Assembly: GCA_002104905.1 (NCBI GenBank)
Contig: MCFE01000454.1
Location: 1 to 64,000 of the forward strand
Direction: 5' to 3'
From: Basidiobolus meristosporus CBS 931.73
Taxonomy: Eukaryota; Fungi; Basidiobolomycota
DNA: 64,000 bases
The notes under the pieces: model-generated
The model's database searches: none
Told to the model about the DNA's origin: nothing
The model's input: the letters and a program-made list of their open reading frames with translations, nothing else
Made by a program: the position numbers and the translations under genes
Shown here: positions 4,101-59,975 of the stretch, in pieces
How the letters are laid out: each line of letters opens with the position of its first letter
Numbering within the stretch: position 1 is the stretch's first letter

Positions 4101-7100
4101 CCTAAGGTGACTTGCTGGATCTGATATATCCTTGCTTCAATAGCTGATACATTTGTCTCTTCATCTCTTCTAACTCCAGTGGACTCACTATGTAAGGTGT
4201 CTTACTCACTGAGGGGGCTATCTCATATGTCAATGGCATGATCCACCTTTCTGACTAGGGGTAGGCTTACAAATTCATCTGGAAACACGGCTCAATATTC
4301 CTTCAAAACAGTCTGGACCTTCTGGGATGCTGTAGTGTAGGAATCCACCTGTAATACCACCATGAGGAACATCTGGGTACATTCTCTGAGTGCTGTACAG
4401 AATGTGTCTTGCTAAGCTCACTTGTTTCACACATATTGGAATTGATCAGGTTGAAATCTAGTCTGGCAGGTATTAGCTCATAAGTCTTGTTGTCCTTCAG
4501 GTTCTGAGTAGCATGGGTTCTCCAGTTAACTGATGAATTACAACAAAATAGCCAGGTTTTTCCAAGTGCAATGTCAAATTTGCAGGTCCCAAATATATTG
4601 ACTTGTAGGCCTTCTTCATAGTCCTTGATCTTCATTCTTACTGACTGAGTAATATGGCTTATTATGCAAGAGTTCCCATCTGCTGTCAAGACTGAAGTTC
4701 ATTTGGTGGGTTCCAAATTGATTCCAGCTTTCAAGGCTGATTGCTCTGACATTTACTTGTGGAATACTCCTCAGTTAATCATGATCTTAGCAGGTACTCA
4801 ATTTGTTACTTCATTCAAGTTAAATAGCTTTCCTGAGTTTGAAGTCATTTGGGATAGGTATTCTTCCATCATATGGAATGTGAGTTCTGAGCTTTCTCCA
4901 AGATCATCCTCTGTATTACTATGCTCAAGGGCTTCAATATAGCTGAGGGTTCTTGATGGCCGGTGTCCATTTCTTCTCTGAGGGCAGTACTTTTCAATAT
5001 GTTCTTTCTGGTGGTAATTAAACAAAGTCCTTTCTTCCTACATCCTTCTGAGGTAGTATTCTACTGTATAGCATCTATTTCCATTGGCACTGCTTCTAAT
5101 TGTCTTCTTTCATAGGGATTGTAGCCTCTCTGATTAGTCATTGTGGGCTGTCCAGCTGCAAACATAGCTGAGCCATAGTCAATGGCAATATTGATGGCTT
5201 CTTTAATAGTCTGATGTGTCAAGGAACTCACTTCCTTACAAGTTCTTTCCTTCAACCTGCAAATAAAGTATTCAACTTGGTCTAGGGGGTTTATTTGTTT
5301 GATTTATCCACATAGACACCTATATTCATAGATGTACTATTAAACCAATCCTGTCTGTCTCATTTTCTTGAACATCCTTCTTAGTAGTGTCTGCTGGCAT
5401 GGGAGTTCAAGAGTATCCTGAATTTCCAACACAAACTCATCCCAGGTAGAGATTGTAGAGCATCCTGTTATAGTGGCTGACCTGATCTTGCTACGGTACC
5501 ACTGTAAAGCTGCATAATGTAACTTGCTTTCTAGGGCAACTCCCTTAGGCTTAAAAGCTTCTTCAATCAGTAAGAGTCAAGTTCCCAGGTTTTGATTGGC
5601 TCTACCATAATACAAGTTGACCTTCACACTAAAGTGGTTTTGCTTTCTCTGGGCCATGGTAGTCATTCATTGTTGCTGCTGGCTTAGGATCTAGAGTAAC
5701 TGTTGCTGCTGGGCCAGGATTTCCCTATGCAAAATAATTTGGTCCCATAGGTGGATCTGATCCTAATCAGCTGTCAGGATCCCATTAAGAGACTGTCACA
5801 ATACCAGCAGCCTAGAATTAGTGACCCTTTTAACAATTGTATGACAGATAATAACAGCTTTTTGCTAGTTTTACTACCAAATAAAGTGATAAAACTTGAC
5901 AAGATTAGGTTGTTGCTGTGACAATAATTGCATGGTATTGTTGCGGTCTTATTGCACTCTACCACTATTGTGAATGGATCCAACTGACCAGGACATCTAA
6001 TTGCCTTATATGGCCAGAAACTTGATGGTATTTCAGCAAGCTCATAGTCAGACTCTGATGGCATTATACTGGCAGTGTGGTGGCCTACAGCTGGTTCTGT
6101 ATAGTGCTGTCATACCAATTTACCAAGTGGTATTTCCTTTTTCTACCTTCTCTTGGGTAATTCATATATTCCACTGTGGAATCACCCCTCTGTATTTGCT
6201 TGACCATTGCTACCTTGGGTATGCCACATGTAGTTTGAATCAATAAAGACTATGGCCTCCTGTTTACTAACCTCTACAAATGTGCACACCTGCCATAATT
6301 GACATACTTCTATCACCTCAACTAAACAGCTTTTTAGTGTAATACTTGCAAAGTTGCCATATACCTTTTACTGCTGGCAGCATATAGGTGTTGCAAATAT
6401 ATGCTTGGTTGTTGCCACTTCTGCCACAAATACCTCCTGAAAATTGGCAAAGAACTTCTTGGTATTTAGCCAATATATTCCTTCTCCCTGCTGGACTCTA
6501 GTCCCCCTTCTAGGAGTGCTCTGGCTCCTATCTGTGTGAATTCCATACTGAATGATGTAGAAGTTGGCTTGTGATCAAGAGAAACATGGCACACCTTGGT
6601 AGAGTTTTCCTAGTAAATATTAGTTGCTTGTTGCACCCAACCCAACTTTGCATTACTTAACAGATTACCCAAGCATTGGGGCTGCTTAGCTTCTTAATGC
6701 CATAGACATAGGTGTCTTCATGTGTACATTTAATCTCAGTATTTTCCAACTCTTCCTGGCTGTCCTGCATGTGCCAACACATTACATCCATGATGGACTT
6801 GAAGGTAATATTCTTGATGAAATTGGGGTATAATAGTACCTGCAACTTGACTTGTCTTCCTATCCCCCATGCATCTGCTCCATAGGAAACTCCCAAAGGG
6901 TGAAGCAAGGCCAATATTCTCCACACACTGTGCAAGTTGGAGTAGAGAATGGATACAGTAGCAGCAAAGATCTACATGTTCAGCTTATGTTTGTAGTATA
7001 GCTGCTCAAATCCCATCACAAACTCCTTGCACAACTGCTGTAAATAGACTAGTTCTGTTGGATAGTGTCACATAGTGCCAGCCTGTTTATGGTGCCAGAT

Positions 7101-21775: not shown

Positions 21776-22030
21776 CAATATATTTAGAAAGGTCCCAAGT
21801 ACCATTGTGACAGTTTTGGAGTGATTGGAAGTGATTGGGAGAACAAGTGGATCATGTGGTTTTTCATGTCATTGTTTATTGAATGTAAAAGTAGCATTTA
21901 CACTTTTACATGGGCTTGGGGAAAACAAACATATGGAACATACTTAGGAAGGTCCCAAGAACATGTGTGCAGAGTTTGGGGCTGTTTAACCACTTATCAA
22001 AAACTCATGTTTTATTTGTGAAGGGGGCAT
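21776..22030. repeat. Unclassified dispersed repeat, homologous to 55110-55310
   Basis: ttggaagtgattggga..aacaagt..aatgtaaaagt..aaggtcccaag..catgtgtgc..agtttggggctgttt is shared with 55110-55305. A ~50-bp piece also lies at ~20460-20510. Confidence 0.8.
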
Positions 22031-22158
22031 TTTGAGAACCTACATCGACCATGAGCCAGGTCACCAAGAGGAAAAACTATAATACAGGGAAAAGAACTGC
22101 GGGCGCAGGATGGTTCAGATGTAGCCCCCCCCCCTCTTCTTCGAATCATGTTGCATAG

Positions 22159-23046
22159 TCACCACGCTGTGTAGCCACCATCGATGACGATGTCGGAACC
22201 GGTGCAGAAGGCACTGGCCTCCGAGGCGAGCCATATGGTGGCCCCGCATAGCTCATCCGGTGCTCCCAATCTACCTTGTGGGGTGCGCTGACACCACTCC
22301 TGGAAGAGGGTGCGGAAGGAGCGGTTCAGGGCCGTCTCCATGTAGCCGGGGGAGATGGCGTTGCATCGGATCCCATAGGCCGCCCACTCGGCGGCCAGCG
22401 ACTTCATCAGGTGCTTCACCCCGGCCTTGGAGGCGTTATAGGCGCACTGGGGCTGGGGCCAATTCACGATGGTGCCCGACATGGAGGCGATGAAGATGAT
22501 GCTACCGCCTCGTTTCCGGGCGATCATGTGACGACCGCAGGCCTGCGACACGAGGAAGGATCCGTTGAGGTTGATGTCGACCACCCGACGGAATTTCTCC
22601 GCCGGGTACTCCTCGGCCTTCACCAGGTCGGCCACCCCGGCCGAGTTGACCAGGATGTCCACCGAGCCGAAGTCCCGTACGACGGCGTCGATCACCTCGT
22701 TCACCGAGGTCTCGTTGGTGACGTCCACCTTGTAGAATTTCCCCTGCAGGGAGTAGAGGGAGCGAAGCTTGGTGACCGCCTCTTGGCCAACACTTTCCTG
22801 TAGGTCAAGTATGGCGACCGCCTTGAGGCCAACCGAGCAGAGCCCCTCCGCCATGCAGTACCCCAGGCCACCGGCCCCGCCGGTGATCACCGCGACCTTC
22901 CCGTCGCATCGGAACATGGACAGGTAATCCTTTGGAGTGGTGTGGGGAGGATAGCGGGCGTTGGATTCGGCCAACGCGGTGGCGACTTCTTCGGTGGTTG
23001 GTGGGGTGGGCACGACCGCGACGTGTTTGACTGCCTCGGGGTCCAT
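22159..23046 (-). CDS. Short-chain dehydrogenase/reductase (sorbose reductase / D-arabinitol 2-dehydrogenase-like), 295 aa, intronless
   Basis: TGGAGGLG cofactor motif, NSAG, SMSG, YNASK catalytic motif, VNWPQPQCAYN and C-terminal DGGYTAW, typical of fungal polyol SDRs. Confidence 0.93.
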   Translation of the reverse strand: MDPEAVKHVAVVPTPPTTEEVATALAESNARYPPHTTPKDYLSMFRCDGKVAVITGGAGGLGYCMAEGLCSVGLKAVAILDLQESVGQEAVTKLRSLYSLQGKFYKVDVTNETSVNEVIDAVVRDFGSVDILVNSAGVADLVKAEEYPAEKFRRVVDINLNGSFLVSQACGRHMIARKRGGSIIFIASMSGTIVNWPQPQCAYNASKAGVKHLMKSLAAEWAAYGIRCNAISPGYMETALNRSFRTLFQEWCQRTPQGRLGAPDELCGATIWLASEASAFCTGSDIVIDGGYTAW

Positions 23047-24324
23047 TCGAAATAGACGTGTAACGGTGAAGTGAAGGGAAGGGAAGGGAAGGGAATGGAG
23101 TAGGGTGATGCGTGATGGGAACGAGAAAACTGTAGATCAAGTGGTGACAGCTGGCGGGTGCCCCCGGTATTTAAGCGAAAATCCTCAAGTGGGCAGGATC
23201 CCACCCCCCACTCGCCCCCCTCCGCTGTTGACGGTGTGATCGGTGACCTGAACATGAAGCAACGACCTCGGCGATGGGGACCTGTGAACGTAAGCGGGTG
23301 GACCTTTTCGGTAAGCCGTCGACCACCCAGTGGCGACGAGGCGAACGTGGGTTTGCTGGATTGGGAGGTCGATCGTTTGAGGGACTTGAGAGCCTCCGCT
23401 GGATCTTGGCGATTCCGAGATCTCCATCAAAGCGGCGGCTCCAGCACAGCGACCAGAGGAGCCATGAAACCTGGTGAATGGTGGCATACCGGCCCCATGC
23501 CAATCTCGAACCTCGCTGGGAGCCTCGGGCAAATCAGCTCCCCACCCCTCTTCCCTTACCAGCTCGAACATGGATTATGTAACCGAGGTTCCGGATGACG
23601 TGGTCCGTCCTTCACACCAGCCCACTTCCCAGTGGCTCTCAGGTGAGTAGTGATCTGTCGGCTCGGTGATCTATGAGCGATGCGTGTGGCTTGTTTCATC
23701 CGCCTTGGGGAGGCTTGGCAGCATTCCGCCCCGTTATTGCCACGGCGGTAGCGTCATACATGACTGTACCGGTCGAGCTCATCGAGGTGCATCGTTCTTG
23801 ATCCGACAAGACCAACCATCACTCCGTCCTAGCCCAACACCCCCTCACTCCCGCCTACGCACCGTTTTCGGGCCAAGGCAGCCTCGTTCCAGCGTAGAAA
23901 GAGGTCATACCTTTGCAAGGCCGCTTTCCGAACGGAAAGGCTCGGCTGGTGTACCGACAGGAACCGCGAGGCCACACATCAGGTGGATTTGGGCATTCAT
24001 CACGGATGGCTAGGCAAATATGGATGTTGGCCCACGGACCAGACAATGCCTGCACGTATCATCATTCACCCAGTCAAAATGGCCATCGATTGGCCTGTGT
24101 TACGTAAGGAGCCAACGGGCCGATTCAATCCCCACAAGCAACAGCCAACAACATGGGTGGTTGGAGCAGGGTAAGGCATGGCAAGGCAGTCCTGCCTTCC
24201 GGAGGAACACAAGGGAGGGGAATCAGCAGGAGACGAAATGGGTTCGACACGTAGACTTTATTAATTTCTACTACATGCCCACATGTATGTTACATCAATT
24301 TAATATATCCCACACATACGGGAA

Positions 24325-27300
24325 CTAATCCTTTAATGACAAGAAGTTTTGGATGCTGTTGGAGAGGGCCTCGATCTCCGCCTGGTACCCCTTGATCTTG
24401 GAGTCGTTCATCTCCCGCACATCACTGCGCACCTTGCTCTCGTAGTCGGGGATCTCGGTCTTCTTGAGCAGGGAAGTCAGACTCACCTGCACCTTGTCCA
24501 ACTTCTTGTTCAACTTCCCGACCTCCGCTTCGATGTCCACCTGTCCCTTGACCATCAGCAACACGTTGATGTCCTCGGTGACGGTGGAGGTGGCGCAACC
24601 GGCGGGGGCGGCCTCGGACTTGCCCAACACGTTGGCCTGCTTGCATCCCTTGGTGAGGGTGACGATGGAGCTGGCCTCCTTGGCGAGTAACTCTCTCACC
24701 TCGTCTTGCCCGATGGAGATGTAGATCTGGGCATTCGAGGAGATGTTGTACTCGACGATCAAGGAACGGGCGGCCTTCACGATGGCGAACACGTTGTCGA
24801 AGTCTCTCTCGGCCTTCTCGTTGTCGTAGGATGGCTCCTCCACAGGGTAGCTGGCCTTGGAGATGGTGGGGATGGTGTCGTTCTCACGACGAGGCAATCT
24901 CTGGTACAGCTCCTCGGTGACGAAGGGCATGAAGGGATGGAGAAGCTTCAACCCGGCCTCCAAACAGGTGTACAAGGTGTCCTTGGCGGAGCGTTGCTGG
25001 CTGGCGTTCTCGGGGGAGGAGTCGTCGGTGATGGGCTTGATCACCTCCACGAAGATGTCGCAAAGCTCGTACAACCAGAAGCTGTACACCGCCGAGGTGG
25101 CAGCCATGAAGTTCTTCTCAGTCAAGGCGGCATTGACGGCGGTGGCGGCCTTGTTCAATTTGTGGAGGATCCAGAGTTCCGCGAGGGACTCTTGTCCGGT
25201 GAGCTTGGCATCGGCTCTGGGCTTGAAATCCTCCCCGAGCTTCATCAGGGCGAATCGGGTGACGTTCCAGAGCTTGTTACAGAACTTACGGTATCCCTCC
25301 ACTCTAAGGATGTCCAAATTGATGTCACGTCCGGTGGAGGTGTAGGCGCAGAGGGCGAATCTCAGCGCATCGGTTCCGCACTCGGGGATTCCGTTGGGGA
25401 AATCTGCCTTCTGGCCAGCCTTGGCCTTGACGGCCTCTCTGGGGTCAAGGTTGCCTTGGTCAAGCTTGTGGTGGAGGGCCTCGAGGGTGATACCCTCGAT
25501 CACATCGATGGGGTCGATCACGTTACCCAAACTCTTACTCATCTTACGACCGTGGGCATCACGGATCATGGCGTGACAGAAGACTTGCTTGAAGGGAACC
25601 TCGCCGGTAAGCTTGATACCCAACATGACCATACGAGCGACCCAGAAGAAAAGAATATCCCAACCGGTCTCGAGGAGGGTGGCGGGGTAGAAGCTGTCGA
25701 AGTCAAGGGTCTTCTTGGGCCAGCCCATGATGGAGAATGGCCACAATCCAGAGGAGAACCAGGTGTCTAACACATCGGGATCTTGCTCCAAAGTGAACTG
25801 CTTTCCGGCGAATTTGGTGTTGGCCTTAGCTTGGGCTTCCTCCAAAGTGCGGCCAGACACCCAGTAGTTTCCGTCGTTGGCGTCGTGGGTTTCTCCCTCG
25901 ATCTTGACGAAGTAGGCAGGGACTCTGTGACCCCACCACAACTGGCGAGAGATACACCAGTCTTGGATGTTCTCGAGCCAACGGAACCATTCCTTCTCGG
26001 AGGCCTTGGGCTGAATTTCCAACTCACCGTCGACAACAGCCTTCATGGCGGCATCAGCCATCTCCTTGCAGCGGACATACCACTGAGGCTTCATCAAGGG
26101 CTCGATAATATCACCAGATCTGGTACAGATGGGGACGGACATTGGGTTGTCGCGGGTCTCCACGTAAAGACCCTTCTCTTTAAGAGCAGCGAGCACAGCC
26201 TCACGAGCATCGAAACGCTTGAGTCCCTCGAAAGGAGCAGCGTGGGCGTTGAGGGTACCGTCGTCGTTCAAGATGTTGATGAACTCAAGGTTGTGACGCT
26301 TTCCGACTTCGTAATCGTTGAAATCGTGGGCGGGGGTAATCTTGACCGCACCAGTACCGAAAGCCATGTCCACAATGATGTCGTCGCAAACGATGGGGAT
26401 TCTACGTCCGTTGAAAGGATGGATCACATACTTGCCGTGGAGATGCTTGTAGCGCTCATCCTTGGGATGGACGGCGACAGCGGTATCACCGAGCATGGTT
26501 TCAATACGGGTGGTGGCAACGATGATCTTCTCATCGGAGTTCTCGACCTGGTAAATGAACGAGATCAACACACCGAATTCGTACTTCTTGTTGGAGTCAT
26601 ATCCAGGGATGGACAAGAGGGTGCGTCCGGGGAGCTCCTTGTTCTCGACCTCCAAGTTGGACAAGGCAGTGTTCAACTTCACCGACCAGTTGACGAGGCG
26701 GGTGGCGCGATAGATGACTCCTTCTTCGTGCAACTTCACGAAGGTCTCGGTCACGGCGTCACTGAGATCGGGATCGAGAGTGAACTTGGCGCGATCCCAG
26801 TCGTAGGAACCGCCGAGGCGTCTCAACTGGCGATAGATGTGATCGCCATACTGATGCTTCCATTCCCACACCTTCTCGACGAACTTCTCACGGCCAAGGT
26901 CGTGTCTGGTTTGTTGGCTGGTCTTCCAGAGTTGCTTCTCGACGACAGCCTGAGTAGCGATACCAGCGTGATCACAGCCAGGGTTGTATAGGGTGGTCTT
27001 GCCAGACATACGATTCCATCTCACAAGGGTATCTTGAATGGTCACGGTAAGAGCGTGTCCAATGTGAAGGGAACCGGTGACGTTTGGTGGGGGAGCAGGA
27101 ATGACATAGGCTCCGGCGGGTTTGACCTTGCCATCGGGGCCGAATTCGGGCTTGAAATGGCCCTCCTTCTCCCACCATTCGTACCAAGCAGACTCGACAG
27201 CCTTAGGATTGTAGGCAGCAGCAAGAGGAGCGCTGAGATCTTTCTTCTCACCCTTGGGGGTGGTGTTGACGAACACCTCCTCCTTAGGAGCAGCAGCCTT

Positions 27301-27504
27301 CTCCTTGGGCTCCTTCTTCTTCTTCTCGGCTTGTTTTCCGGACGCGGCTTTCTTTGCCTCTAAGGCGGCCTGCTTGGCGAGGAATTTCTCCATCTTGGCC
27401 TTACGCTTGGCCTCGTTTTTCTCGGCATTTTTGGATTTGGCCTCAGCCTCGGCGGCAGTCTGTTGCTGCTGCTGTTGCTGTTGCTCTAGCTCTTTATTCT
27501 CCAT
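24325..27504 (-). CDS. VAS1: Valyl-tRNA synthetase, 1059 aa, intronless
   Basis: PPPNVTGSLHIGHA (HIGH), KMSKS, DWCISRQLWWGH, TTRIETMLGD editing domain and C-terminal coiled coil. Confidence 0.99.
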   Translation of the reverse strand: MENKELEQQQQQQQQTAAEAEAKSKNAEKNEAKRKAKMEKFLAKQAALEAKKAASGKQAEKKKKEPKEKAAAPKEEVFVNTTPKGEKKDLSAPLAAAYNPKAVESAWYEWWEKEGHFKPEFGPDGKVKPAGAYVIPAPPPNVTGSLHIGHALTVTIQDTLVRWNRMSGKTTLYNPGCDHAGIATQAVVEKQLWKTSQQTRHDLGREKFVEKVWEWKHQYGDHIYRQLRRLGGSYDWDRAKFTLDPDLSDAVTETFVKLHEEGVIYRATRLVNWSVKLNTALSNLEVENKELPGRTLLSIPGYDSNKKYEFGVLISFIYQVENSDEKIIVATTRIETMLGDTAVAVHPKDERYKHLHGKYVIHPFNGRRIPIVCDDIIVDMAFGTGAVKITPAHDFNDYEVGKRHNLEFINILNDDGTLNAHAAPFEGLKRFDAREAVLAALKEKGLYVETRDNPMSVPICTRSGDIIEPLMKPQWYVRCKEMADAAMKAVVDGELEIQPKASEKEWFRWLENIQDWCISRQLWWGHRVPAYFVKIEGETHDANDGNYWVSGRTLEEAQAKANTKFAGKQFTLEQDPDVLDTWFSSGLWPFSIMGWPKKTLDFDSFYPATLLETGWDILFFWVARMVMLGIKLTGEVPFKQVFCHAMIRDAHGRKMSKSLGNVIDPIDVIEGITLEALHHKLDQGNLDPREAVKAKAGQKADFPNGIPECGTDALRFALCAYTSTGRDINLDILRVEGYRKFCNKLWNVTRFALMKLGEDFKPRADAKLTGQESLAELWILHKLNKAATAVNAALTEKNFMAATSAVYSFWLYELCDIFVEVIKPITDDSSPENASQQRSAKDTLYTCLEAGLKLLHPFMPFVTEELYQRLPRRENDTIPTISKASYPVEEPSYDNEKAERDFDNVFAIVKAARSLIVEYNISSNAQIYISIGQDEVRELLAKEASSIVTLTKGCKQANVLGKSEAAPAGCATSTVTEDINVLLMVKGQVDIEAEVGKLNKKLDKVQVSLTSLLKKTEIPDYESKVRSDVREMNDSKIKGYQAEIEALSNSIQNFLSLKD

Positions 27505-47542: not shown

Positions 47543-47893
47543 TTAGACGTTAACGATAACATCAACTCTATCCTTCAAGCAAACAATTGCCCGAATGTCC
47601 AGGCCGAGTGCCCGAACCTTAGCGTCAACAAGCGGACAGCCTTCATTGGGGCCTTGATGGGTAGTGGCGGTGTTAGGAGGCATCGAGTTGTTCTTACTGA
47701 GACAGACGACAGCGTTGATGTTTAGACCAAGAGCCTTTATCCGGACCTCAGCATCATCACAAGTGACAGGCGGGACATGGGGGGACTTCGCAGGTCCAGA
47801 TCCGACATCCACATTTACACCAACCGGAAAGGGTGAAGCCAGGGCAGAGATAACAGCATAGAGTATGGTGAATGAGCCCAAGATGAAGCGCAT
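47543..47893 (-). CDS. Small secreted protein (116 aa) with two C-x18-C repeats, paralog A
   Basis: Signal peptide MRFILGSFTILYAVISALA; repeats CDDAEVRIKALGLNINAVVCL and CPLVDAKVRALGLDIRAIVCL; TATAAATA ~55 bp upstream. Confidence 0.88.
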   Translation of the reverse strand: MRFILGSFTILYAVISALASPFPVGVNVDVGSGPAKSPHVPPVTCDDAEVRIKALGLNINAVVCLSKNNSMPPNTATTHQGPNEGCPLVDAKVRALGLDIRAIVCLKDRVDVIVNV

Positions 47894-48346: not shown

Positions 48347-48700
48347 ATGCAATTGTTGTATACAGTAACGCTCTTTGCCTGTTTGGCATTCTCCGTTATC
48401 GCTTCACCCTTTCCGGTTGGTGTAAATGTGGATGTCGGATCTGGACCTGCGAAGTCCCCCCATGTCCCGCCTGTCACCTGTGATGATGCTGAGGTCCGGA
48501 TAAAGGCTCTTGGTCTAAACATCAATGCTGTCGTCTGTCTCGGTGAGAACGACTCAATGCCTCCCAGCACCGTCGCCACCCACACTGGCCCCAATGAAGG
48601 CTGCCCACTTGTTGACGCTAAGGTTCGGGCGCTCGGCTTGGACATCCGGGCAGTTGTCTGCCTTAAAGATAGAATTGATGTTTTCGTTGATATTCACTAA
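48347..48700 (+). CDS. Small secreted protein (117 aa) with two C-x18-C repeats, paralog B (head-to-head with A)
   Basis: Signal peptide MQLLYTVTLFACLAFSVIA; same mature sequence family as paralog A; TATATAAA at 48303. Confidence 0.88.
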   Translation: MQLLYTVTLFACLAFSVIASPFPVGVNVDVGSGPAKSPHVPPVTCDDAEVRIKALGLNINAVVCLGENDSMPPSTVATHTGPNEGCPLVDAKVRALGLDIRAVVCLKDRIDVFVDIH

Positions 48701-48997: not shown

Positions 48998-49999
48998 ATG
49001 AAGCTACATCCAGTTCAAAGACTTCCCTTGGAGATATGGATACATATCCTTAGTCATCTTTCTCTACAAGACTTTGCCCACCTACTTTCAGCGGACCGCA
49101 GGTTTGCCAGATTTCTGTACCAGCTTGGCAGTACTGAGTGGCTGCAAATTATTAGGCAGATGTGGACCGGATTAAGCGGCAAAGCAATGCCCTGGACAGA
49201 ATACAGAGAAACCAAGGATGATGTATTGTGGATGGCCAACACTCAATTCGCCAGGATCGAGGATAGGTCTCGATTACTACGGCATCTACTATACATTGAT
49301 CGCATGCAGCAAGATATAGTAGAATCCATACTTCGTGAATCAGTTTATTTACTCGAATGCCCTAGACACCCACCCATTCATTTCGCCATGTGCTATACGC
49401 AAGATTCACATCCCTACCGACTCTATGGTAACGACATCTTAAAGCATCTACAGAAATCCCTGTCCGTCGTACTGCCCCTGGATTTTTTACACTTCCTACT
49501 TTGTTACTCCCATCGCTTGGCTCTCAAACAGCCCAATCTTCAATGGGATTTCAGATTCACCAGTCCGCCCTTCCTCTTCTTGGGTCCAGAGGAAACATGG
49601 CGCCACTTCCGGCTGCTGAATTTAGAGGAGTATGTAGACCCCGACTTTGAAGAGGGTATTCGTCCCTCTCATGTACTTTACAACCGACGAAATCCTAATA
49701 TCAACGCCTCGTGGAAGGTCAGCAATAGAAAACTGCTAGTCATTAGTCAAAGCACATCAGGGGATAGACTGCTCTTGGATGTGACGCACCCAGATAGTAG
49801 CACGTTTGGTTGGATATATGCCCACTCTAATCATCCACTAGTATTCAATACTCACAACCCACAATTTCTGGACTTCAGCATCACCGATCTTATGTACAGA
49901 ATCACCAGCAACGATCAGATGAAATTGAAAACCATTTGGTTTCATAATCTTTTTGACAAGCCCAACAGGGGTTGTTCAATGCTTCATGTAAATAAATAA
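48998..49999 (+). CDS. F-box protein with probable SMI1/KNR4 (SUKH)-like C-terminal domain, 333 aa
   Basis: F-box: RLPLEIWIHILSHLSLQDFAHL. SUKH-like: ILKHLQKSLSVVLPLDFLHFL ... KLLVISQSTSGDRLLLDVTHPDSSTFGWIY. Confidence 0.75.
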   Translation: MKLHPVQRLPLEIWIHILSHLSLQDFAHLLSADRRFARFLYQLGSTEWLQIIRQMWTGLSGKAMPWTEYRETKDDVLWMANTQFARIEDRSRLLRHLLYIDRMQQDIVESILRESVYLLECPRHPPIHFAMCYTQDSHPYRLYGNDILKHLQKSLSVVLPLDFLHFLLCYSHRLALKQPNLQWDFRFTSPPFLFLGPEETWRHFRLLNLEEYVDPDFEEGIRPSHVLYNRRNPNINASWKVSNRKLLVISQSTSGDRLLLDVTHPDSSTFGWIYAHSNHPLVFNTHNPQFLDFSITDLMYRITSNDQMKLKTIWFHNLFDKPNRGCSMLHVNK

Positions 50000-50778
50000 A
50001 CGTATGCTCCGAGCAGATACGGTGCCATATGGACGGACACATGCTACATGTGTTCAATCCAAGGTCCCTATCAACTGCCTAATCACCCAAACTTATCGCC
50101 TTGCATAACTTATCACTTTCTCAACGGAGTAAACGTGTGATGTAATGGTTTTGGGGATTGGACACGGAAATTAGACATAACCCCTCAATAGTATTGATGT
50201 CTAGAGTGTTGGCTGGCAGCGGTGGGAATCTATATGAAACTCTTGGTCGTTGCCTAAGCCCCACTCCATTGTTTGCTGATACACGAATACCAATGGGATG
50301 CAGTATTGGGGTGCGGTCAAGTTGTTAGCAACTTTGAATGGCGGGTCTACGGAATTCTAATTAGGTCTAGTCTCACGGCTGCAATCCAACCCGATCACAT
50401 TTAGGACGATGTGTCAATTACATTATACTGCGAAGGATCTGCATATATTGGCCTACATCTTAGGCCTATTACCTATCTATTTATATGTGTTGCATCTGGG
50501 CCCAATCAATATTTGGATATTATCGAATTCTCTCTGGAGGCAATCCCATCTCACTGGTCGATATGCACAATCTTCGGATCATTTGCAAGTTTTAACTAGT
50601 TCCTTTCCACGATTTGTGGATCTCCTAAAATGAAAGTTTATACTAAAGCGGTATGTTGATTTGTATAAAAGCGCCTGGGGTGACTTTACAGTACTCACCA
50701 ACTGCCATCCACTGTGCTCTCTTGGCTACTACCTCTACTTTCCAAACATTATCCGATATCCATTCTAAAATTGACAAT

Positions 50779-51000
50779 ATGTTCGCAGTTCCAGTGCGCT
50801 CTACCATTTCCAAAGCCATGCCTTTCCCGTCTATAGCCTTCGTTGGCCTGACGCTCGGAGCCAGCAGCATCGCCATTCTCAACACGAATACCCCAAATAC
50901 TCTTCCACCTACAGCAACGAAACCTAAGGGCAATACGAACAACGCCTCTCATCCTTCTATGATCCTGTCCCTTTCCCCTGGGGACTACGTATGTTTGTGA
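50779..51000 (+). CDS. 73-aa microprotein, possible divergent member of the VWW-tail family (ends GDYVCL)
   Basis: ATG in gacaatATG context; TATAAAA at 50664; acid-free N-terminus plus hydrophobic stretch PFPSIAFVGLTLGASSIAIL; G-x-Y-V aligns with the family tail. Confidence 0.4.
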   Translation: MFAVPVRSTISKAMPFPSIAFVGLTLGASSIAILNTNTPNTLPPTATKPKGNTNNASHPSMILSLSPGDYVCL

Positions 51001-51617
51001 TTTGACCACCGGATACTCCTGCGGAGATCTGCTTCATGGATACCATATCATAACCTAGAATCGCTTCAAGCATTTTGTAAATTTACTCCGTACCTTCTCT
51101 CACAAATCTAAAGGAGGGAAAACATTTTAGACGCTCAAAGTCCTATTAACAAAACCCGCTCAATATAATTCGTCTCCTTTGTCCTGTATAGAATACCTAT
51201 CAATAACATCAATAAATTCGAAAGAAGATTCGGTCACCCCATGATATGCACACCACCAATAGCCTGTTGAGCAGTCTATCCATCTTAGGACACAACTCTA
51301 TATAATTAATGTTTCCACATAGTTTGTGTTACAATCCCGAGTGTTGGCATAGGATAGCATGCGTAACTCTAAAGTGAACTCTTTTTAGCCAATGTAGGTG
51401 AGCCAATTGAACCCTCCTGGCGGACTTACATGTATTCAAATAGTATCGCCATCATTCTTCAGATTTTGCCATATTTGGACAAAGTTGGCAAGAGAACGTC
51501 AGTTAGTTTAATGATCTGGTATATATTGTTTGTCTATACTTAATTACATTGTCAATTTCAATTTTGTTTACATGTGTGGATGAAGGTTCACAGATTGTTT
51601 AAGCATGTGTTGAGCAT

Positions 51618-51818
51618 TCACCACCAAACGAAAGTACCAAGATCCTTCGCCATTGAGCCTTTAAAGGAGCAGATCTCGGGTCCTTTAGCTTTCTGGGTCA
51701 GAAGTGTGGATCCAAGCCAGCCGACGCCGAAAACACCCAAGGCCGCTAACGATAGTGGGCTTGCGGAATTGATAACCCGAGCAGAGATAGAAGTAGTGCG
51801 AATGATTGTTGCTGACAT
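51618..51818 (-). CDS. 66-aa microprotein ending KDLGTFVWW
   Basis: MSATIIRTTSISARVINSASPLSLAALGVFGVGWLGSTLLTQKAKGPEICSFKGSMAKDLGTFVWW*. caacATG context; TATAAATA ~55 bp upstream. Confidence 0.7.
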   Translation of the reverse strand: MSATIIRTTSISARVINSASPLSLAALGVFGVGWLGSTLLTQKAKGPEICSFKGSMAKDLGTFVWW

Positions 51819-52896
51819 GTTGAGTATTAACGAGTTCGCTGTCACGATGTAGATTCCCAGACACCATAACGGTATTTATATTTGAAAAAAACCGAATCGA
51901 CATTTCAACACACTACTCCACCAACTGTGCCCAGGAAATTTTCCATTTTCTTTTCGCAGACTGGGTCCCGAATATTCCAAACCGATTTCGAATGTTTTCT
52001 TTGATGGAGTGTAGCTGTACCCAGCATTTTTTCCAAGAAATGGAGAGCGAATTGGCCCCTGAATTCGACATTCAATAAGTAATTTATCGCTTTTCAACGA
52101 TTCGTTGTACAGGCGCAAGTGGAGATTGCGTCGGTGTTCTCCATGGACTCCAACAAATACAATGAATTTGATCACCGCCCGCTTGATTCGTCTCTCCATA
52201 CGATTGCTTTGACTGCCAGAAATGAGCAAAATTAATAACAGTGCATCACAATTGGCACAATCTGATCGTAAGATTGTCCTAATGAAATTATCCACCCGAA
52301 TTATCCCGAGCGTACACAAGTCAGTCTAGCTCAGTGTTAGCAATAATAGTCCACTCATCACTCATCACTTATCACTCATCACCAGTATCGCTTTAATTCC
52401 AAGAATAAGAATTCGTAAGTCTGAAGCCTGAATTGTGCCCATGTGATAGGCTCCTAAATATAGGTGATTGATTTGTTGACCCACATGGCTAATAAATTTC
52501 ATTGCAGCTGGGCGATGTAGGTAATTCTACGCCAGAGGACGAATTTGAAAATAATCCGATTACTCAGAATGATTCTGGAAGCACAGGAGTTAAAGTGAGT
52601 GGGATCTAGATGATCTTTTTCGTCGAGGAATCGGGAAACTTGGGGAAGACATCGGAAGACTCAGAATCGGTTAAATCTCCCTGGCCAACTAGTGGTTTAG
52701 ACGGCTGGTGGAGCTAAGCCGTTGGTTAATCCTTTTTTCGGATTAGCCACTTACGTTACTCACCAATCCATTTCCTCGTTACATCGGGTGGATTCGGAGG
52801 CCAGCAGGTTCACAGTGCAGCTTTGAAGGATTATAAAATTTACCTATTCGCCTCAGGAAGTATTCAGATCTTCAAATCAACCTAGCAACCATAGCA

Positions 52897-53049
52897 ATGA
52901 ACTCTACCACCTTCGTCGCCAAGGAGAGCTCCTTCAAAGGCATCCGCGAGCTTCTTGCGTTCAAATGGCTCCAATCAAAACCTACCCAAGGTGCTACATT
53001 GACGAAAAGTAATCTTTCTCAGGATCTTGGCTCCTATGTCTGGTGGTAA
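52897..53049 (+). CDS. 50-aa microprotein ending QDLGSYVWW (not in the ORF track)
   Basis: MNSTTFVAKESSFKGIRELLAFKWLQSKPTQGATLTKSNLSQDLGSYVWW*. TATAAAA at 52832; C/G-ending codon bias in the 5' half. Confidence 0.7.
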   Translation: MNSTTFVAKESSFKGIRELLAFKWLQSKPTQGATLTKSNLSQDLGSYVWW

Positions 53050-53401
53050 CCCATAGATACCCCAGCCTGTACTCTTTACACCACCTAGACAAATGTAAAT
53101 ATAATGTTCCATGCGAATAAACCTTCGGATAAATCCTCACAACACATTCCTTTTCTCTGACTATTTCTGCATTATCTCGAGTTCGATGGAAGTCGATAAT
53201 TCGTGGCAAATCTGTTGTTCTATGGATGGCCTTGTTCGGCGGTAATTCCTGATCTTATGGTAAATTGGGTAAACTTCGATCATGTTGCTCAAACTCCTGA
53301 TGTTTCCTTTTCAAGTCTGAGGTTACAAAATACGCGATTGCAGTTTATTAAAAAGAAAATACAGGTTGATATATATAATACAGTGGCTACAGGGCTTGTT
53401 T

Positions 53402-53605
53402 TCACCACCAAACATAGGACTCCATATCCTGCTTTAGTGTAGGCTTGCTTGGAGAAAGCTGATGCGACTTGCTTTTGTTGATCGCGGTGGCAACGAACCA
53501 CGCTATTGAGCCAGAGCCAAGTCCAGTGAGCATAAATGGTCCAAAGTTGGCCGAGGCGATGGGCATGAGTCTGAGGTATTGGAAACGTGTAAGCGCGAAG
53601 TGCAT
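53402..53605 (-). CDS. 67-aa microprotein ending QDMESYVWW
   Basis: MHFALTRFQYLRLMPIASANFGPFMLTGLGSGSIAWFVATAINKSKSHQLSPSKPTLKQDMESYVWW*. cacaatATG context; TATATAA ~57 bp upstream. Confidence 0.7.
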   Translation of the reverse strand: MHFALTRFQYLRLMPIASANFGPFMLTGLGSGSIAWFVATAINKSKSHQLSPSKPTLKQDMESYVWW

Positions 53606-55094
53606 ATTGTGGATTGCTGTCAAACGGTGGATTGATGCTGGTACCAAGAGATAATTTAGGCTTATATAGGTGAGGTATGGAGAAAGTCGTATATCACCGC
53701 TCCGTCATTGGTGATCCATTAGCTTCCAGAACGTCTTGTGTGGGGTCCACGAGTGAAAGGTTAATTGGAGCCAACCAAGTATAACTATAGTATATATATA
53801 TACTACAGACTGAATGTTTTTAACTGAACCGTAGTCAAATATGGAAGCAGAGACCACCAGAATTCTATAATAGGAAACAGAGCTGGGATACTATATTAGT
53901 GATAATTCTAGACCGAATACTGATGATCGGAACAGAAGTTGACCTGTATTTACAGTGAACGATTGTTGAGGGATGATTTAACTGAAGTGGAAGTGAATTC
54001 TGACTGAGCATATCAACTGAGTATAGAGATGGAGTTCACCTAAACTCGGCAATATCCAAATAACGATCTATAATTTGTCGTGGGGATTGGTATCAGCGAG
54101 TTAATGGGTCTAGAAGGAAGCTGGAAATGTTGTAGCATATAGATTTAGTATCGCAGCATGTGTACAGACATCTAGTGCCACTTAATACACACGCCTTTGG
54201 TTTCAAACTGACACAGGCTGGGGAATTGGTTTGCAGTCTCGTCAAAATTTTACGCATTATTCGAACTCCAAATAACAATCAGGATCTATTATTTATTTGC
54301 ATTATTTGCATTATTTGTAGGGATTTGGTTAAACATGGGTTAAACTTATTTAATCCCAATCAATTCCTTCGGAATTAGATTGCTTGACGTGGCGCATAAG
54401 TGTTTTAAAAATACATCAAATTAAGCCATTTTTAAATTTTGTTTAATGTCAATTGGAGGCCAACAGTCTAATACGTAGAATAAAACGCGGAAACCAATTA
54501 TCACAATCTTACTCAAATTTAATGAAAGAATTAGCAATGGGTAGTGGTAGCTTCTTAATAATGAAATCTTTACAAGCACCTGGTGGCGAGAATTATTTAG
54601 GTATTTATTGATGGTTCTGGACATCCATGACTTCATAAATCGCCAATAGTTGACAGCAAAAGTCAAAATGGAACTACAAATTCCGTTTGCAAATTCCCCG
54701 ATTAATTGAAATATTAAAATACCAGAAGGTACACAGGTGTCCAAGGTATCTAAGTTTTGTACATGCCTCTTGATGGCCCACTGTAATGCATTTCTATTCA
54801 AAGATCTGGGAAGTTCCTTGGAGGTAAAGTTTCCCTTCACTCTGTAAGCTTTGTTCAACTTAACATCAAGTAATACATGGACCTTCAGATATTGCATGCT
54901 AGTCAAATGCCTTATCAGATGGGAAAATAATCATCAATGGGATTGAAAAGGGGAGGAGTGCAGATAAAATTCAACTTTTGCTTGATTTGAATTCAGTATT
55001 GTTAGTATCATTCTTGCATCCAAATGAGTATATTAGCTATATCACATAGACCATAAGCAATGCACATTATTACTCACTTACCAATATCTCTATT

Positions 55095-55750
55095 AGGTGT
55101 TGTTAGTGTCTTGGAGATTTTGGAAGTGATTGGGAAAACAAGTAGATTATGCGATTTTCACTTAATGATTTATTCAATGTAAAAGTGGTATTTATGCTTA
55201 TACATGATATTGGCAAAACAAGAATGCGAAATATGTTTAAAAAAGGTCCCAAGAGCATGTGTGCAAAGTTTGGGGCTGTTTGGACAACCTTGAGAAATTC
55301 CATGTTCTGGGCGCCTGATATTTTGGTGAAAATATTCGAAGTACGTCCCGACAAGGTATTTGGTCAGAATTCTCTAAGATTTGTAGATTATGTACCAAGT
55401 GGCCAAGTTAGGTGAATATTTAGGTGTAATTACGAAATTTACAACATTGTGATCTACTTCGAAATCTACGGGTACCCAAAATATGATTATTCTCGAAGTT
55501 GTCTATGTGAGCCAAGACTATGCGCGTATTGTTGCAAAATTCTGAAAGCATTGGAAGTGATTCGGTGAGCGCAGAAAACTGTATGATATTTACTCGGTAG
55601 TTTGTTGATTTGAAATTAGGCATTCCTACTTCTGAAAGCACTTTGTCAAGTTGAATCTCAATATATTTTAAGAAAGTTATCATGAGATGATGTGCCAAGT
55701 TTGGGGTCTTTTGGAAGAGCTTGAAAGTTCTGATAGCTTCACCAAGTCAA
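55095..55750. repeat. Unclassified dispersed repeat (homologous to 21776-22030) with a diverged second unit ~440 bp downstream
   Basis: 55110-55305 aligns with 21816-22005. The anchors ttggaagtgatt and agtttgggg recur at ~55550 and ~55700. Confidence 0.65.
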
Positions 55751-56389
55751 AGAATTGGCCCGCATACTACAAGCTCGGTATAAATTAAATAACTTGAACA
55801 CTTGTGTCCTTGGAGCCTTCCTGTATATATTCTACAGGCTTTTTCCAAGTCCTTGAAAACATAAGGTACAACTTGTTCAGTTGATAATGCTGTAAATTTC
55901 GTATTTATGAAACTTATTTAACACCTATATCTATCGCATATCTTGAGTCTCAACTTTGCTAATTGCCGTATTAAGAACTGTGAGTTTAGGAATTGGCATG
56001 TAGGATGCATATTACTTTAGATCATTAAAGCCCCAGTAGTCATTAAAATAATGTCGCTTTTGTCCAAATAACTCCAAGGTAAGTTTCCGGAGTTGAAACA
56101 TTCGTATGGTCGATTCCGCAGTACGGATAGGTTCAAGAGTGTATCTGTAGAAGCACAAAAACGAAGAAATGATTAGTAGTGCGCCAAGTACGATGGGTTC
56201 AATCGAAATAAAGCTCTTTCAGCATCTGTGTACTTGCGCACTGATGTAAATGCAAATAAAGGCACACTTGGCGTGCTAATAGCCAAACTTCTACGACACT
56301 ACTCAAGGCCATATATATATTGTTGATATGAATCAAAATGATTTTCATGTTTATTTTTACACACAGTTAATCGAGGCAACAAATGGTAT

Positions 56390-59300
56390 CTATAGGTATT
56401 TTTTGGCCTGGAATCGTTTCAGGTGCAGCGACGAGCAGATCACAGTCACGGATGAAAGCACCATGGCTAATCCGGCAAGTTCCGGAGGGAATGGGTGTAG
56501 CCATAGGGGATAAAACACACCAGCAGCTACTGGAATGGCCAGGAAGTTGTAGAAAAAGGCCCACGCGAAGTTGTATCGGATTCTGCGAAGTACTTTCGCA
56601 GAAAGATCAAGCATGGTAAGAAGCGAGATAAGATTAGGCGTATTAAGAATAATGGATGCTGCCTCAATGGCGATATCAGTTCCAGAGGATGGTGAGATGC
56701 CAACGTCGGCCTGAGCCAATGCGGGGGAATCATTGATACCATCTCCCACCATTGCCACTACTGCGTTTCTATGGTTGGGCATGCCGTCGCGAAGCCATGG
56801 GAAGTACCGTCCTTTGAAGGTACGAGCGGGGTCGATCGAGACGCCTTGGGCTTGAAGGGATGCCACTTTGGAGGCCTTCTCTTCGGGCACAACCTGGGCC
56901 ATTACTCTCTCCGGTTTAATCCCTATCTCGCGTGCAATTGCCGTAGCAGAGATACGATGATCACCGGTGAGCATCCACACTTGAATTCCACGCTTTTCGA
57001 GCTCGCGAATGATCTCGGCGGTGTGCTCACGGGGACGATCAGCTACTCCAAGGGTAAGTACGATGAACCCATTGATAGCAACCTGCACAATCGAGGCACC
57101 GGTATTTTGGAATGCCTCGATCTCCCGATCTTCAGTCTGCTTGTCAGTAATCGAGCTAGCATACTGGCTACCAATAGATGTGATCCAACCCGGGCTTCCA
57201 ATTTGGATTGTCAGAGACGCGAATTCCAGATCCGATTCTTGACCGGCATTCTTGGAGTAGATGAATTCGGGGAAGACTTTGGCCTCTGGACTGGTCGACA
57301 CGTTGATCACTGCCTCAATCCCCTTACCTGGGACCTCTTGACAAGAGTCAACTTCAAAAGGAACTACTGATGAGTAGTCGGCGGGCAGATTGCCATCACT
57401 AGTTTGCTTTTCCGAGGCTTTCTTCTGGTCAACAAGTGGGGCAATGATATCAGTGGCATACTGCACCACTGCGCGAGCCAAGGGATGCTCTGAGCCACTT
57501 TCTAGCTTGTGGACGAGCTCCCATAGAAGGCGCTCTGCGTCGGAAAGAATCAATGTCTTGGTGTCGTCATCAGATTTCTGGACTGGAGTGCTAGCTCCGT
57601 ATGTAATCCTGTCCGCGCTAAGATACATCCTCACTCCATTGACGATTGGCTTACCAATGGTCAATGTCCCGGTCTTGTCGAAAACAATGGCGTCAAGTCG
57701 GTTGATCATTTCCAAGGCTAAACCTCCACCTTTGATCAGAATTCCATGTTTGGCGGCAACACCGGTTCCAACCATGATGGCTGTGGGAGAGGCCAGCCCT
57801 AAACCGCAGGGACATGCGATGACGAGCACGGTGATGGCAAACCACAAAGCGAAAACACCTGGTGAGGTTTTCTGCTTGGTAATCCATTCAGTGGGAACGT
57901 GTCCGGTATATCCTAGTGAACACCAGAGAATAAAGGTGATGATCGCTAGAGCGACAACCAGTGGAACAAACACACCAGAGAGCATATCAGCGAGCTGTTC
58001 CATTGGGGCCTTCTTGGCTGATTGTGCATCCTGGACAAGCTTGATGATGCGGGAAAGTGTGGTATCGGCTCCCACCTTTTCAGCTACGAAGTAGACGGGG
58101 GATGTCAAGTTGAGGGTTGCAGATATGACGCGGTCACCATTTTCGGCACTCTTTCTGACTGGAATGGATTCGCCGGTGATAGTGGATTCATCAAATGTGG
58201 ATGTGCCATGGTAAAGGGTACCATCGCAAGGAATACGTGTTCCAGGGTTGACTTTTAGTATGTCTCCTTGTTGAACAAGAGCAAAATCGATCTCCTCTTC
58301 TTGGGCGTTCTCGATGGGCTGGCCTTCTTTGATGGTCACAAGTGTTGCAGTTTCTGCCTGGAGCTCCATAAGCTTACTGATGGTGTCAAAGGTTTTTCCC
58401 TTAGCGTGAGCTTCGAGGAACTTGCCAAACAGAATGAAGGTTATCAGGTAGATGGTTGTATCGAAAAATTGATGACTCTCAGATGCGCTTTTCTCAACAA
58501 TGTTGGCGATACACGTCCCTACTGAAGCAAAGTAGGCTACGCCAGTACCCAAAGAGACAAGTACATCCATGTTTGCTGTATGCGCATACCGCAACGATTT
58601 GTAGGCTTTACGGTAGAAAGGCCAGGCGAGAAAGAATTGAACAGGGGTAGCCAGGATCCACATAATGAGAAATGATACACTGAGCCCTGGGCAAACCTCA
58701 GAGGCAAAAGCTCTGCGGACTTTGTTTTCCTTTGATAGCGCAACATCAAAGATAATTCCGATGATGAAAGCAGGAATGGCGAAGCTGAGTGCCCAAAGAA
58801 AACGAATAAGAAGGGAGCGTGTTTCACGAGAGTGGCGCTCTTGGATGGATGGCCCTTTGGTGCTGGGTTGCACAATAGTAGCCTCATATCCCAGGTCAGA
58901 AATAAGCTCCACCAGGGTACGTGGGCCCACCTTTGTCGGATCATGAACTACCACTCCGGATTGCATAAGAAGGTTGATCTGACACGAAATGATCCCATCA
59001 TGCTCACGGAGGTTGGACTCTATACTATTAACACAGGAAGAGCAGGTCATACCAGTGATGTTCAAATTGGTGGTGAGGGTGGTGTTTTCATCGGAGTCCT
59101 CTTTATCGGATGAGTCCTTTTCTTGAATGGTCTCCCACTGCAAATCGACTAGATCATAGCCGATGTTGGAGACAGCTTCGTTGATTGTCTTTCCTAGTGC
59201 TTCTTGATCTTCACTCGCGAACACCGCCACTCCACGGCCGGTGAGAGCACTGACACTGATGGTGCCTTCAACGATGCTTTCAATAGCAGACAGGGCCTTT

Positions 59301-59975
59301 TCGGTGGTTTTCACACAGGAAGAACACGTCATCCCTTCGATCTGCATAGTGGCACGGCTCATGGTAACCATATTCTTGGTTGGTTTCTTTTTGTTGATAA
59401 CTTCCCACTGCAAGTCGACCAAGTCATACCCGATATTGGATATCGCCTCCTCGATGATCTTCCCAAGACTTGCTTGATCTCCATTTGTGAATACGGCTAC
59501 ACCACGACCCGTCAGTGCACTGACACTGATTGACTCTGGAAGTATGGATTCGATGGCTGTCAACGCCTTTTCCGTGGTTTTGACGCATGAGGAGCAAGTC
59601 ATTCCCCTCGATCTGCATGATAGCACGATACTCCAGAGATTCCTTGCTTTCTGTTGGTACAGTGGTTGGGTTCTGTGACTGATTTGCGATAATCTCCCAT
59701 TGGAGATCAACCAAATCGTAACCAATGTTTGAGATAGACTTCTCGATGGCTTTACTTAGCCTGTCGCGATCGTCAAGTGTGAAACTGGCTACGCCACGGC
59801 CAGTCAATGAACTGACACTGATGGAGTCTATGACGATTGAGTCGATTGCTGCCAAGGCTTTTTCCGTGCTTTTGACGCATGACGAGCAGGTCATTCCCTC
59901 AATTTGCATGATGGCCCGATATAGGAAGCTCTGGTCAGGTTGAGAAACTTTAATACTCTGTAGCTCTGACGACAT
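56390..59975 (-). CDS. CCC2: Cu(I)-transporting P1B-type ATPase (Ccc2/ATP7-like) with four N-terminal metal-binding domains; 1-nt frameshift in a C4 run at 59604-59607
   Basis: GMTCSSC x4 once ORFs 59424-59975 and 56390-59725 are joined; TGES, IACPCGLGLASP, DKTGT, SEHPL, GDGIND, YN and M..SS membrane ligands. Confidence 0.93.

Follow-up and report, generated by a model that had tools for sequence, protein, structure and literature searches.

Four paralogous microprotein genes of Basidiobolus meristosporus carry related C-terminal tails

Results

Four genes under purifying selection in two species

Analysis of a 64,000-nucleotide stretch of the fungus Basidiobolus meristosporus CBS 931.73 (assembly GCA_002104905.1, contig MCFE01000454.1; referred to here as the window, whose coordinates equal those of the deposited record in exact look-ups) revealed four intronless microprotein genes, A–D, which lie on alternating strands (+, −, +, −) along positions 50779-53605 and end in closely related C-terminal tails. 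They are almost certainly real, selected genes of a single family and, as judged from their sequences, are independently transcribed and form an old paralogous family. An earlier note, drawn from the letters of the window alone, had described four short open reading frames (ORFs) of 73, 66, 50, and 67 residues, each with a TATA box upstream; their positions and lengths were confirmed, and the TATA boxes were found at 62–115 bp from the ATG. Because the strands alternate and every ORF has its own TATA box, in addition to its own ATG and stop, genes A–D cannot be exons of a single larger spliced gene, an outcome that the same note had named as one that would refute its proposal.

All four genes have orthologs in Basidiobolus ranarum on contig JASJQH010007227.1 of assembly GCA_040143965.1 (L001), in mirror-image order and orientation relative to the window, with F-box/SUKH and GATA genes beyond the gene A ortholog, an arrangement also found in the window. 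In B. ranarum a further copy each of A and D lies on other contigs (Table 1). When the cluster DNA of the two species was compared, only the coding parts and the promoter of gene A could be aligned, at 67–74% identity, and the remaining intergenic DNA was unalignable. Nei-Gojobori counts on the ortholog pairs gave proportions of nonsynonymous (pN) and synonymous (pS) differences of 0.135 and 0.72 for A, 0.286 and 0.85 for B, 0.249 and 0.718 for C, and 0.166 and 0.81 for D; synonymous sites, with pS of 0.72–0.85, are thus saturated. The ratio of nonsynonymous to synonymous substitution rates (dN/dS) was 0.06 and 0.13 in two between-species pairs, with dS uncomputable in the other three. Conservation between the two species also extends to the start, stop position, and TATA boxes. 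Saturated pS, low pN, and unalignable intergenic DNA together show that A–D code for proteins and are under purifying selection. The four types are older than the split between B. meristosporus and B. ranarum. The proposal that the peptide, and not a DNA repeat, is under selection is therefore upheld, both by this comparison, in which all four frames are intact in B. ranarum and dN/dS is low where finite, and by the synonymous variation in the tails described below.

The C-terminal tail

Genes B, C, and D end in KDLGTFVWW, QDLGSYVWW, and QDMESYVWW, respectively, with the stop codon directly after, which gives the pattern D-[LM]-x-[ST]-[YF]-V-W-W-stop. In the six-frame translation of the window [YF]VWW-stop occurs three times, always in these genes, compared with a mean of 0.01 in 300 shuffles. 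The VWW tail reported in the earlier note is accordingly present in B, C, and D, and gene A has a related tail of its own, SMILSLSPGDYVCL, which is identical in all three A sequences; the two B. ranarum proteins of this type, P0007 and P0008, match gene A over the last 14 residues. The A tail ends Y-V-C-L-COOH and has in common with [YF]-V-W-W-COOH the Y-V and a hydrophobic-x-hydrophobic-COOH pattern, to which both tail types conform (V-C-L and V-W-W). The TGT and TTG codons of the A tail are each a single base away from TGG.

In the ten genes that the two species have between them, synonymous variation affects almost every tail position (GTA/GTT/GTC/GTG, GGT/GGA/GGC/GGG, and TAC/TAT) and all three stops, TGA, TAA, and TAG, are used, extending to the larger set what the note had seen of differing codons and stops. 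The L-S-Q-D ahead of [YF]-V-W-W and the exact position of the stop are fixed across paralogs. The synonymous differences rule out a DNA repeat as the cause of the shared tail and, taken together with the use of three stops, show that what is constrained is the peptide and where its free end falls.

Architecture of the proteins

Types A, B, and D can be aligned, contrary to the earlier claim that the N termini cannot, and are comprised of an M-x5-R start (MFAVPVR, MSATIIR, and MHFALTR), a hydrophobic helix rich in Gly, Ala, and Ser, a polar linker rich in Lys, Ser, Thr, and Pro, and the tail. Their first 20 residues carry a net charge of +1 to +2 and the first acidic residue is found only at position 41–69, so that the acid-free N terminus with one hydrophobic helix, previously ascribed to two members, is a feature of three. 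The hydrophobic segment begins at residues 16–24 and is at least 19 residues long; it is marginally hydrophobic, with a best 19-residue Kyte-Doolittle mean of 1.05–1.8 and a summed Hessa free energy of +1.4 to +4.1 kcal/mol. Gly, Ala, and Ser occur in the helices in a conserved, glycine-zipper-like spacing (GVFGVGWLG and GLGSGS), and B, C, and D carry an invariant Trp where the helix ends. In type C, the corresponding stretch, FKG[IF]RELL[AG]FKWLQ, is amphipathic (hydrophobic moment, μH, 0.62–0.67) and aligns with the helix end of the other types; type C appears to have lost the membrane helix, with the linker and tail retained.

The regions of the proteins have diverged to very different extents. 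Identity between orthologs is 0.64–0.92 in the helix, 0.67–1.0 in the tail, 0.22–0.56 in the N terminus, and 0.31–0.47 in the linker, the corresponding values between paralog types being 0.15, 0.58 (last 12 residues), 0.09, and 0.12. The greater identity of the helix relative to the linker between orthologs argues that the helix is retained and functional rather than a cleaved signal. The linker varies in length, that of type A being 14 residues longer, and is predicted to be a disordered, polar, and fast-evolving segment. An AlphaFold2 model of D, built from seven sequences, places helices at residues 4–12 and 22–47 and leaves the linker and tail structureless, at low confidence (predicted local distance difference test score 57). 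Taken together, these features suggest that the proteins of types A, B, and D each span a membrane once.

Table 1. Positions of genes A–D, their TATA boxes, conserved upstream blocks, and B. ranarum counterparts (L001, L002, and L004 are B. ranarum contigs)
Feature	Position	Strand	Description
Gene A	50779..51000	+	73 residues; M-x5-R, hydrophobic helix at residues 16-34, long polar linker, tail SMILSLSPGDYVCL-stop
Gene B	51618..51818	-	66 residues; MSATIIR, helix LSLAALGVFGVGWLGSTLL, linker, tail KDLGTFVWW-stop
Gene C	52897..53049	+	50 residues; amphipathic stretch FKGIRELLAFKWLQ, linker, tail SQDLGSYVWW-stop; hydrophobic helix absent
Gene D	53402..53605	-	67 residues; MHFALTR, helix FMLTGLGSGSIAWFVATAI, linker, tail KQDMESYVWW-stop
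TATAAAAG box, gene A	50664..50671	+	115 bp 5' of ATG
TATAAATA box, gene B	51873..51880	-	62 bp 5' of ATG
TATAAAAT box, gene C	52832..52839	+	65 bp 5' of ATG
TATATAAG box, gene D	53661..53668	-	63 bp 5' of ATG
Conserved upstream block, gene A	50572..50703		70% over 140 nt (blastn vs L001 5673-5808); contains the TATA box; probable promoter
Conserved non-coding block	52602..52645		~250-295 bp 5' of gene C; 80% over 44 nt vs B. ranarum (blastn, B-C spacers); possible regulatory element
B. ranarum D	L001 2021-2218	+	P0006; 69% identity to gene D
B. ranarum C	L001 2613-2765	-	P0010 (K7432_007256); 58% identity to gene C
B. ranarum B	L001 4492-4674	+	ends DLGTYVWW
B. ranarum A	L001 5370-5591	-	A orthologs P0007 and P0008, 71-74% identity to gene A
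Extra A copy, B. ranarum	L002 5379-5600		P0008; another contig
Extra D copy, B. ranarum	L004 3662-3856		P0011; another contig

Promoters and annotation

Nine of the ten genes of the two species have a TATA box between −42 and −121 relative to the ATG, including TATATAAG at −121 in A_r1, the B. ranarum ortholog of gene A, and TATAAATT at −53 in the ortholog of gene C. Two upstream blocks are conserved between the species, of which that containing the TATA box of gene A is probably its promoter, to judge from the alignment, and that in the B-C spacer may be a regulatory element. When the promoters were compared for common 8-mers, none beyond the TATA box was convincingly present in all. Rfam and transfer RNA (tRNA) scans of the whole window were empty.

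The description of the genes as unannotated was found to be correct for A and C, which are missing from the protein collection of GCA_002104905.1, and incorrect for B (P0001) and D (P0002), which are deposited there as nameless proteins. The B. ranarum orthologs are all annotated, each as a hypothetical protein. The deposited model of the gene B ortholog (K7432_007258; L001 4360-4674, + strand) is 104 residues long and has a TATA box inside its annotated coding part, 42 bp before an internal ATG at 4492, which is the counterpart of the start of B. meristosporus gene B. The match of TATA box and ATG indicates that this model is over-extended at its N terminus and that the real protein has 60 residues. 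Gene callers systematically miss conserved microproteins; in this family two of four genes are absent from the B. meristosporus annotation and one B. ranarum model is over-extended.

Search for relatives

The distribution of the family outside Basidiobolus was judged from protein collections and metagenome scans. A Pfam scan of nine members assigned no family (best E-value 0.046, far short of the curated cut-off), a sequence profile search of the PDB produced no match (best E-value 1.5), and ESM Atlas features yielded nothing usable, only generic single-helix structural look-alikes. Word-index protein searches returned B. meristosporus and B. ranarum proteins only. An exhaustive hidden Markov model profile search of 1.84 billion representative proteins likewise recovered only the two Basidiobolus genomes, besides one 1677-residue protein (E-value 2e-4, 13 short matched stretches) that was discounted as spurious without inspection. 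When metagenomes were scanned for patterns of the tail and helix, 33 and 138 matches resulted, and tblastn confirmed none of them. Literature searches on Basidiobolus pheromones, the B. meristosporus transcriptome, the YVWW tail, and fungal microproteins turned up no account of this family. The earlier statement that no known family is recognisable thus stands. So far the family has been seen only in Basidiobolus; since small genes often go uncalled, its absence from other fungi is not proven. Genes A–D therefore represent a new sequence family whose kind is familiar in general terms, that of microproteins restricted to one lineage and bearing a linear motif at the C terminus.

Neighbouring genes and other features of the window

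The F-box + SMI1/KNR4 (SUKH) gene at 48998-49999 (+) is an uninterrupted ORF of 333 residues with 54% full-length identity to its B. ranarum counterpart. The deposited B. meristosporus model, of 270 residues, begins at 49187 and leaves out the conserved F-box, and the B. ranarum model, of 319 residues, begins 3′ of the conserved MHPVQRLP start. Two annotated proteins of 116 and 117 residues are encoded head-to-head at 47543-47893 (−) and 48347-48700 (+); they have 85% mutual identity, no Pfam match, and an internally duplicated motif, C..A[EK]VR[I.]KALGL.I.AVVCL, and are kept in B. ranarum (L001 8714-9055 and 9546-9848).

Between the B and C orthologs of B. ranarum lies a spliced model of 64 residues with a hydrophobic stretch (L001 3709-4030, −). 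No counterpart was detectable in the spacer 51819-52896 of the window, and the model was rejected as a member of the A–D family. A gene of the Barstar family (PF01337), whose members are ribonuclease inhibitors and typically bacterial, is located 1.7 kb from the second A-type copy of B. ranarum (L002 3350-3697, −) and may have been horizontally acquired.

The base composition of the window is uneven. The G+C content is 0.55–0.59 in 22001-27000, over an SDR gene (22159-23046) and a valyl-tRNA synthetase gene (24325-27504), and 0.40–0.45 in the flanks; the synthetase falls in one 90% cluster with its B. ranarum counterpart. Transposon-like ORFs are present in the first 21 kb, which are richer in A+T, and a stretch between gene D and the copper ATPase gene (54001-56000) has a G+C content of 0.357 and only short, unconvincing ORFs.

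Discussion

The tail of genes A–D is still best read, we infer, as an element recognised by a partner, as the earlier note had suggested. In the mechanism that we propose, to which as stated here we give a probability of about 0.4, a short, acid-free, and basic N terminus and a weak Gly/Ala/Ser-rich helix would be followed by a disordered linker carrying the tail. The tail would be a short linear motif on a tether, ending in a free carboxylate (aromatic-Val-x-hydrophobic-COOH), and would dock by strand addition into a pocket of a common partner. The helix would put A, B, and D at one membrane and pack against other helices of a membrane complex, with the soluble type C competing for that pocket or modulating its use. 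The acid-free N terminus and the weak helix favour the mitochondrial inner membrane over insertion at the endoplasmic reticulum (ER), albeit weakly, and that membrane is accordingly put forward, with the same reserve, as the most likely site.

Several points weigh against this mechanism or limit it. The N-terminal segments are modestly amphipathic (μH 0.36–0.56) and the topology suggested by the flanking charges is ambiguous. The extra A and D copies of B. ranarum have no neighbouring gene in common with the cluster, so that the genomic surroundings point to no partner, no RNA sequencing runs were listed for 50600-53750, and a prediction of the complex between residues 100–333 of the F-box/SUKH protein and C returned a score of 0.00, which gives no answer either way. 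Moreover, a tail so rich in Trp might just as well reside at the interface of a membrane with no protein partner.

By function, the closest parallels to A–D are EMRE, the regulins, and class II PDZ-type ligands, and by evolutionary pattern they are certain plant prepropeptides and ComX; none is homologous to A–D. Two of these systems resemble the proposed arrangement in plan. EMRE (SMDT1), a single-pass subunit of the calcium uniporter of the mitochondrial inner membrane, has a basic N-terminal targeting region, one helix with small-residue packing motifs, and a conserved tail at the extreme C terminus that docks on another subunit, as in the plan proposed for A–D; its tail, however, is poly-acidic rather than aromatic, it is metazoan, and the mitochondrial site of the Basidiobolus proteins is putative. 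The regulins sarcolipin and phospholamban, micropeptide regulators of P-type ATPases, are tiny single-pass proteins whose helix packs on a partner, and sarcolipin requires its aromatic tail, RSYQY. In contrast, genes A–D have no sequence similarity to them and encode proteins twice as long, with a disordered linker of 15–35 residues. A copper-type P-type ATPase gene is found at 56390-59725, 2.8 kb from gene D, but its product is a P1B copper pump, unlike the regulin target SERCA, and the extra A and D copies of B. ranarum are not beside any ATPase. With neither homology to sarcolipin or phospholamban nor a consistent linkage to a pump, A–D are not placed among the regulins, although they may be analogous in function.

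The first alternative is that the tail needs no partner and is instead a lipid-interface anchor or self-association element, its Trp/Tyr-rich end turning back to enter the interface of the membrane. On this view A, B, and D would be staples made of helix, linker, and anchor, C would be an amphipathic peripheral protein, and the small-residue helices would oligomerise and shape, perturb, or permeabilise the membrane. Trp and Tyr favour membrane interfaces, the Gly/Ala/Ser helices with their glycine-zipper-like spacing are conserved, the Hessa sums indicate helices too weak for stability alone, and type C has an amphipathic helix; all of these are consistent with anchoring. An anchor should, however, tolerate permutations of aromatic and hydrophobic residues, and yet the [YF]-V-W-W order, the L-S-Q-D, and the stop position are fixed. 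In addition, type A swaps W-W for C-L and retains Y-V, which is a better fit to a pocket than to a lipid interface. We therefore regard anchoring as unlikely.

The second alternative, which we consider quite unlikely, is that A–D are precursors of a bioactive peptide (a pheromone, a signalling or antimicrobial peptide, or a peptide made by ribosomal synthesis and then modified post-translationally, RiPP), of which the last 8–12 residues would be the cut product, possibly modified on Trp or Tyr, and the variable body a leader or pro-region. The genes are small, clustered, and TATA-driven, acidic residues lie close to the Tyr, and a variable body with a conserved motif at the extreme C terminus is also the plan of the plant CLE, IDA, and RGF/GLV prepropeptides and of Bacillus ComX, all of them small precursors. 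These, however, have a cleavable signal peptide or an adjoining modifying enzyme, whereas A, B, and D have an internal conserved segment, C has no such segment, and no processing site is recognisable ahead of any tail. Dibasic sites are absent from eight of the nine proteins scanned, the sole case, RK in D_r2, being not conserved, and each protein carries one tail rather than tandem cores separated by KR or RR Kex2 sites. The hydrophobic segment that starts at residues 16–24 is 64–92% conserved despite saturated dS, unlike a signal peptide, and type C is without any signal sequence. Phe replaces Tyr in B. meristosporus B, so that modification of the Tyr would not be essential.

Nor do the surroundings of the cluster contain the enzymes that such a product would call for. 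No DUF3328/UstYa, tyrosinase, prolyl oligopeptidase, methyltransferase, P450, or prenyltransferase was found among the genes within ~10 kb (the copper ATPase, F-box/SUKH, the two 116/117-residue proteins, GATA, GH9, and Kelch) or among the ten large ORFs scanned out of the 27 of at least 150 residues listed in the window. The suggestion of a RiPP precursor in the earlier note is therefore not borne out. Dikaritins such as ustiloxin (YAIG/YVIG) and phomopsin, Kex2 repeat proteins, and MSDIN peptides are, like A–D, short ribosomal peptides from small genes, with a Tyr-Val motif (see also PMC7329392); A–D differ from their precursors in having no tandem cores, KR sites, conventional signal peptide, or conserved leader, and no DUF3328, tyrosinase, or prolyl oligopeptidase gene nearby.

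Two yeast pheromone types were also considered. A precursor of the a-factor type would end in a CaaX box, in which the Cys stands at −4, and the tails of A–D end YVWW or YVCL, the Cys of the A type being at −2. Residues 24–29 of gene C (52966-52983) read WLQSKP, and WLQLKP in B. ranarum C, which resembles the Saccharomyces cerevisiae alpha-factor core, WHWLQLKPGQPMY. Gene C has no signal peptide, repeats, or KR sites, and in the family alignment these residues match the end of the helix in its paralogs B and D; the likeness was taken as chance.

The third alternative, that the tail is a sorting or turnover signal for general machinery (a di-hydrophobic ER-export signal, a class II PDZ-type ligand of a quality-control protease, or a C-degron of a Skp1-cullin-F-box ligase such as the adjoining F-box/SUKH protein), is very unlikely in our estimation. 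Both tails do match hydrophobic-x-hydrophobic-COOH, and they fit class II PDZ-type ligands, including the Trp-rich ones of the HtrA family, in lying at the free end of a disordered segment; no PDZ or other reader of these tails is known from Basidiobolus, and the resemblance is one of pattern only. In both species 780 bp separate the F-box/SUKH gene from gene A, but synteny reaches well past it to the GATA gene and others, so that this adjacency carries no weight, and the extra A and D copies of B. ranarum are without such a neighbour. General sorting signals, moreover, allow far more variation than is seen in these tails. Finally, that A–D are chance or decaying ORFs with no function can practically be dismissed: no RNA run was listed for the cluster and A and C are uncalled in B. 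meristosporus, but the frames are intact, syntenic, and under purifying selection despite saturated synonymous sites and unalignable intergenic DNA, with start, stop position, and TATA boxes kept.

Returning to recognition of the tail by a partner, a motif of 8–12 residues that stays fixed while synonymous sites are saturated predicts one specific reader protein, the more so as the four old paralogs have in common little but the helix plan and the free C-terminal motif. A bolder form of this proposal, which we put at long odds, is that the genes belong to a new peptide-based system of communication or regulation in early-diverging fungi, in which a tail of approximately LSQDLGSYVWW-COOH would be the ligand of one dedicated receptor, membrane-tethered in A, B, and D and free in C. 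Such a ligand could signal, by juxtacrine contact or after secretion, in the hyphal, mating, or gut life of Basidiobolus, or it could form part of a mitochondrial switch in which the soluble paralog competes with its tethered relatives.

What genes A–D offer at present is an orphan family that is well supported and has an interesting motif, and not yet a mechanism. If the tail is released, it would represent a peptide signal in zygomycete-grade fungi, where to our knowledge none is known. The family would constitute a lineage-specific regulatory layer if its partner proves to be a complex of respiration or transport. The tail gives a handle on that partner in a poorly studied, gut-associated, and occasionally pathogenic fungal lineage.

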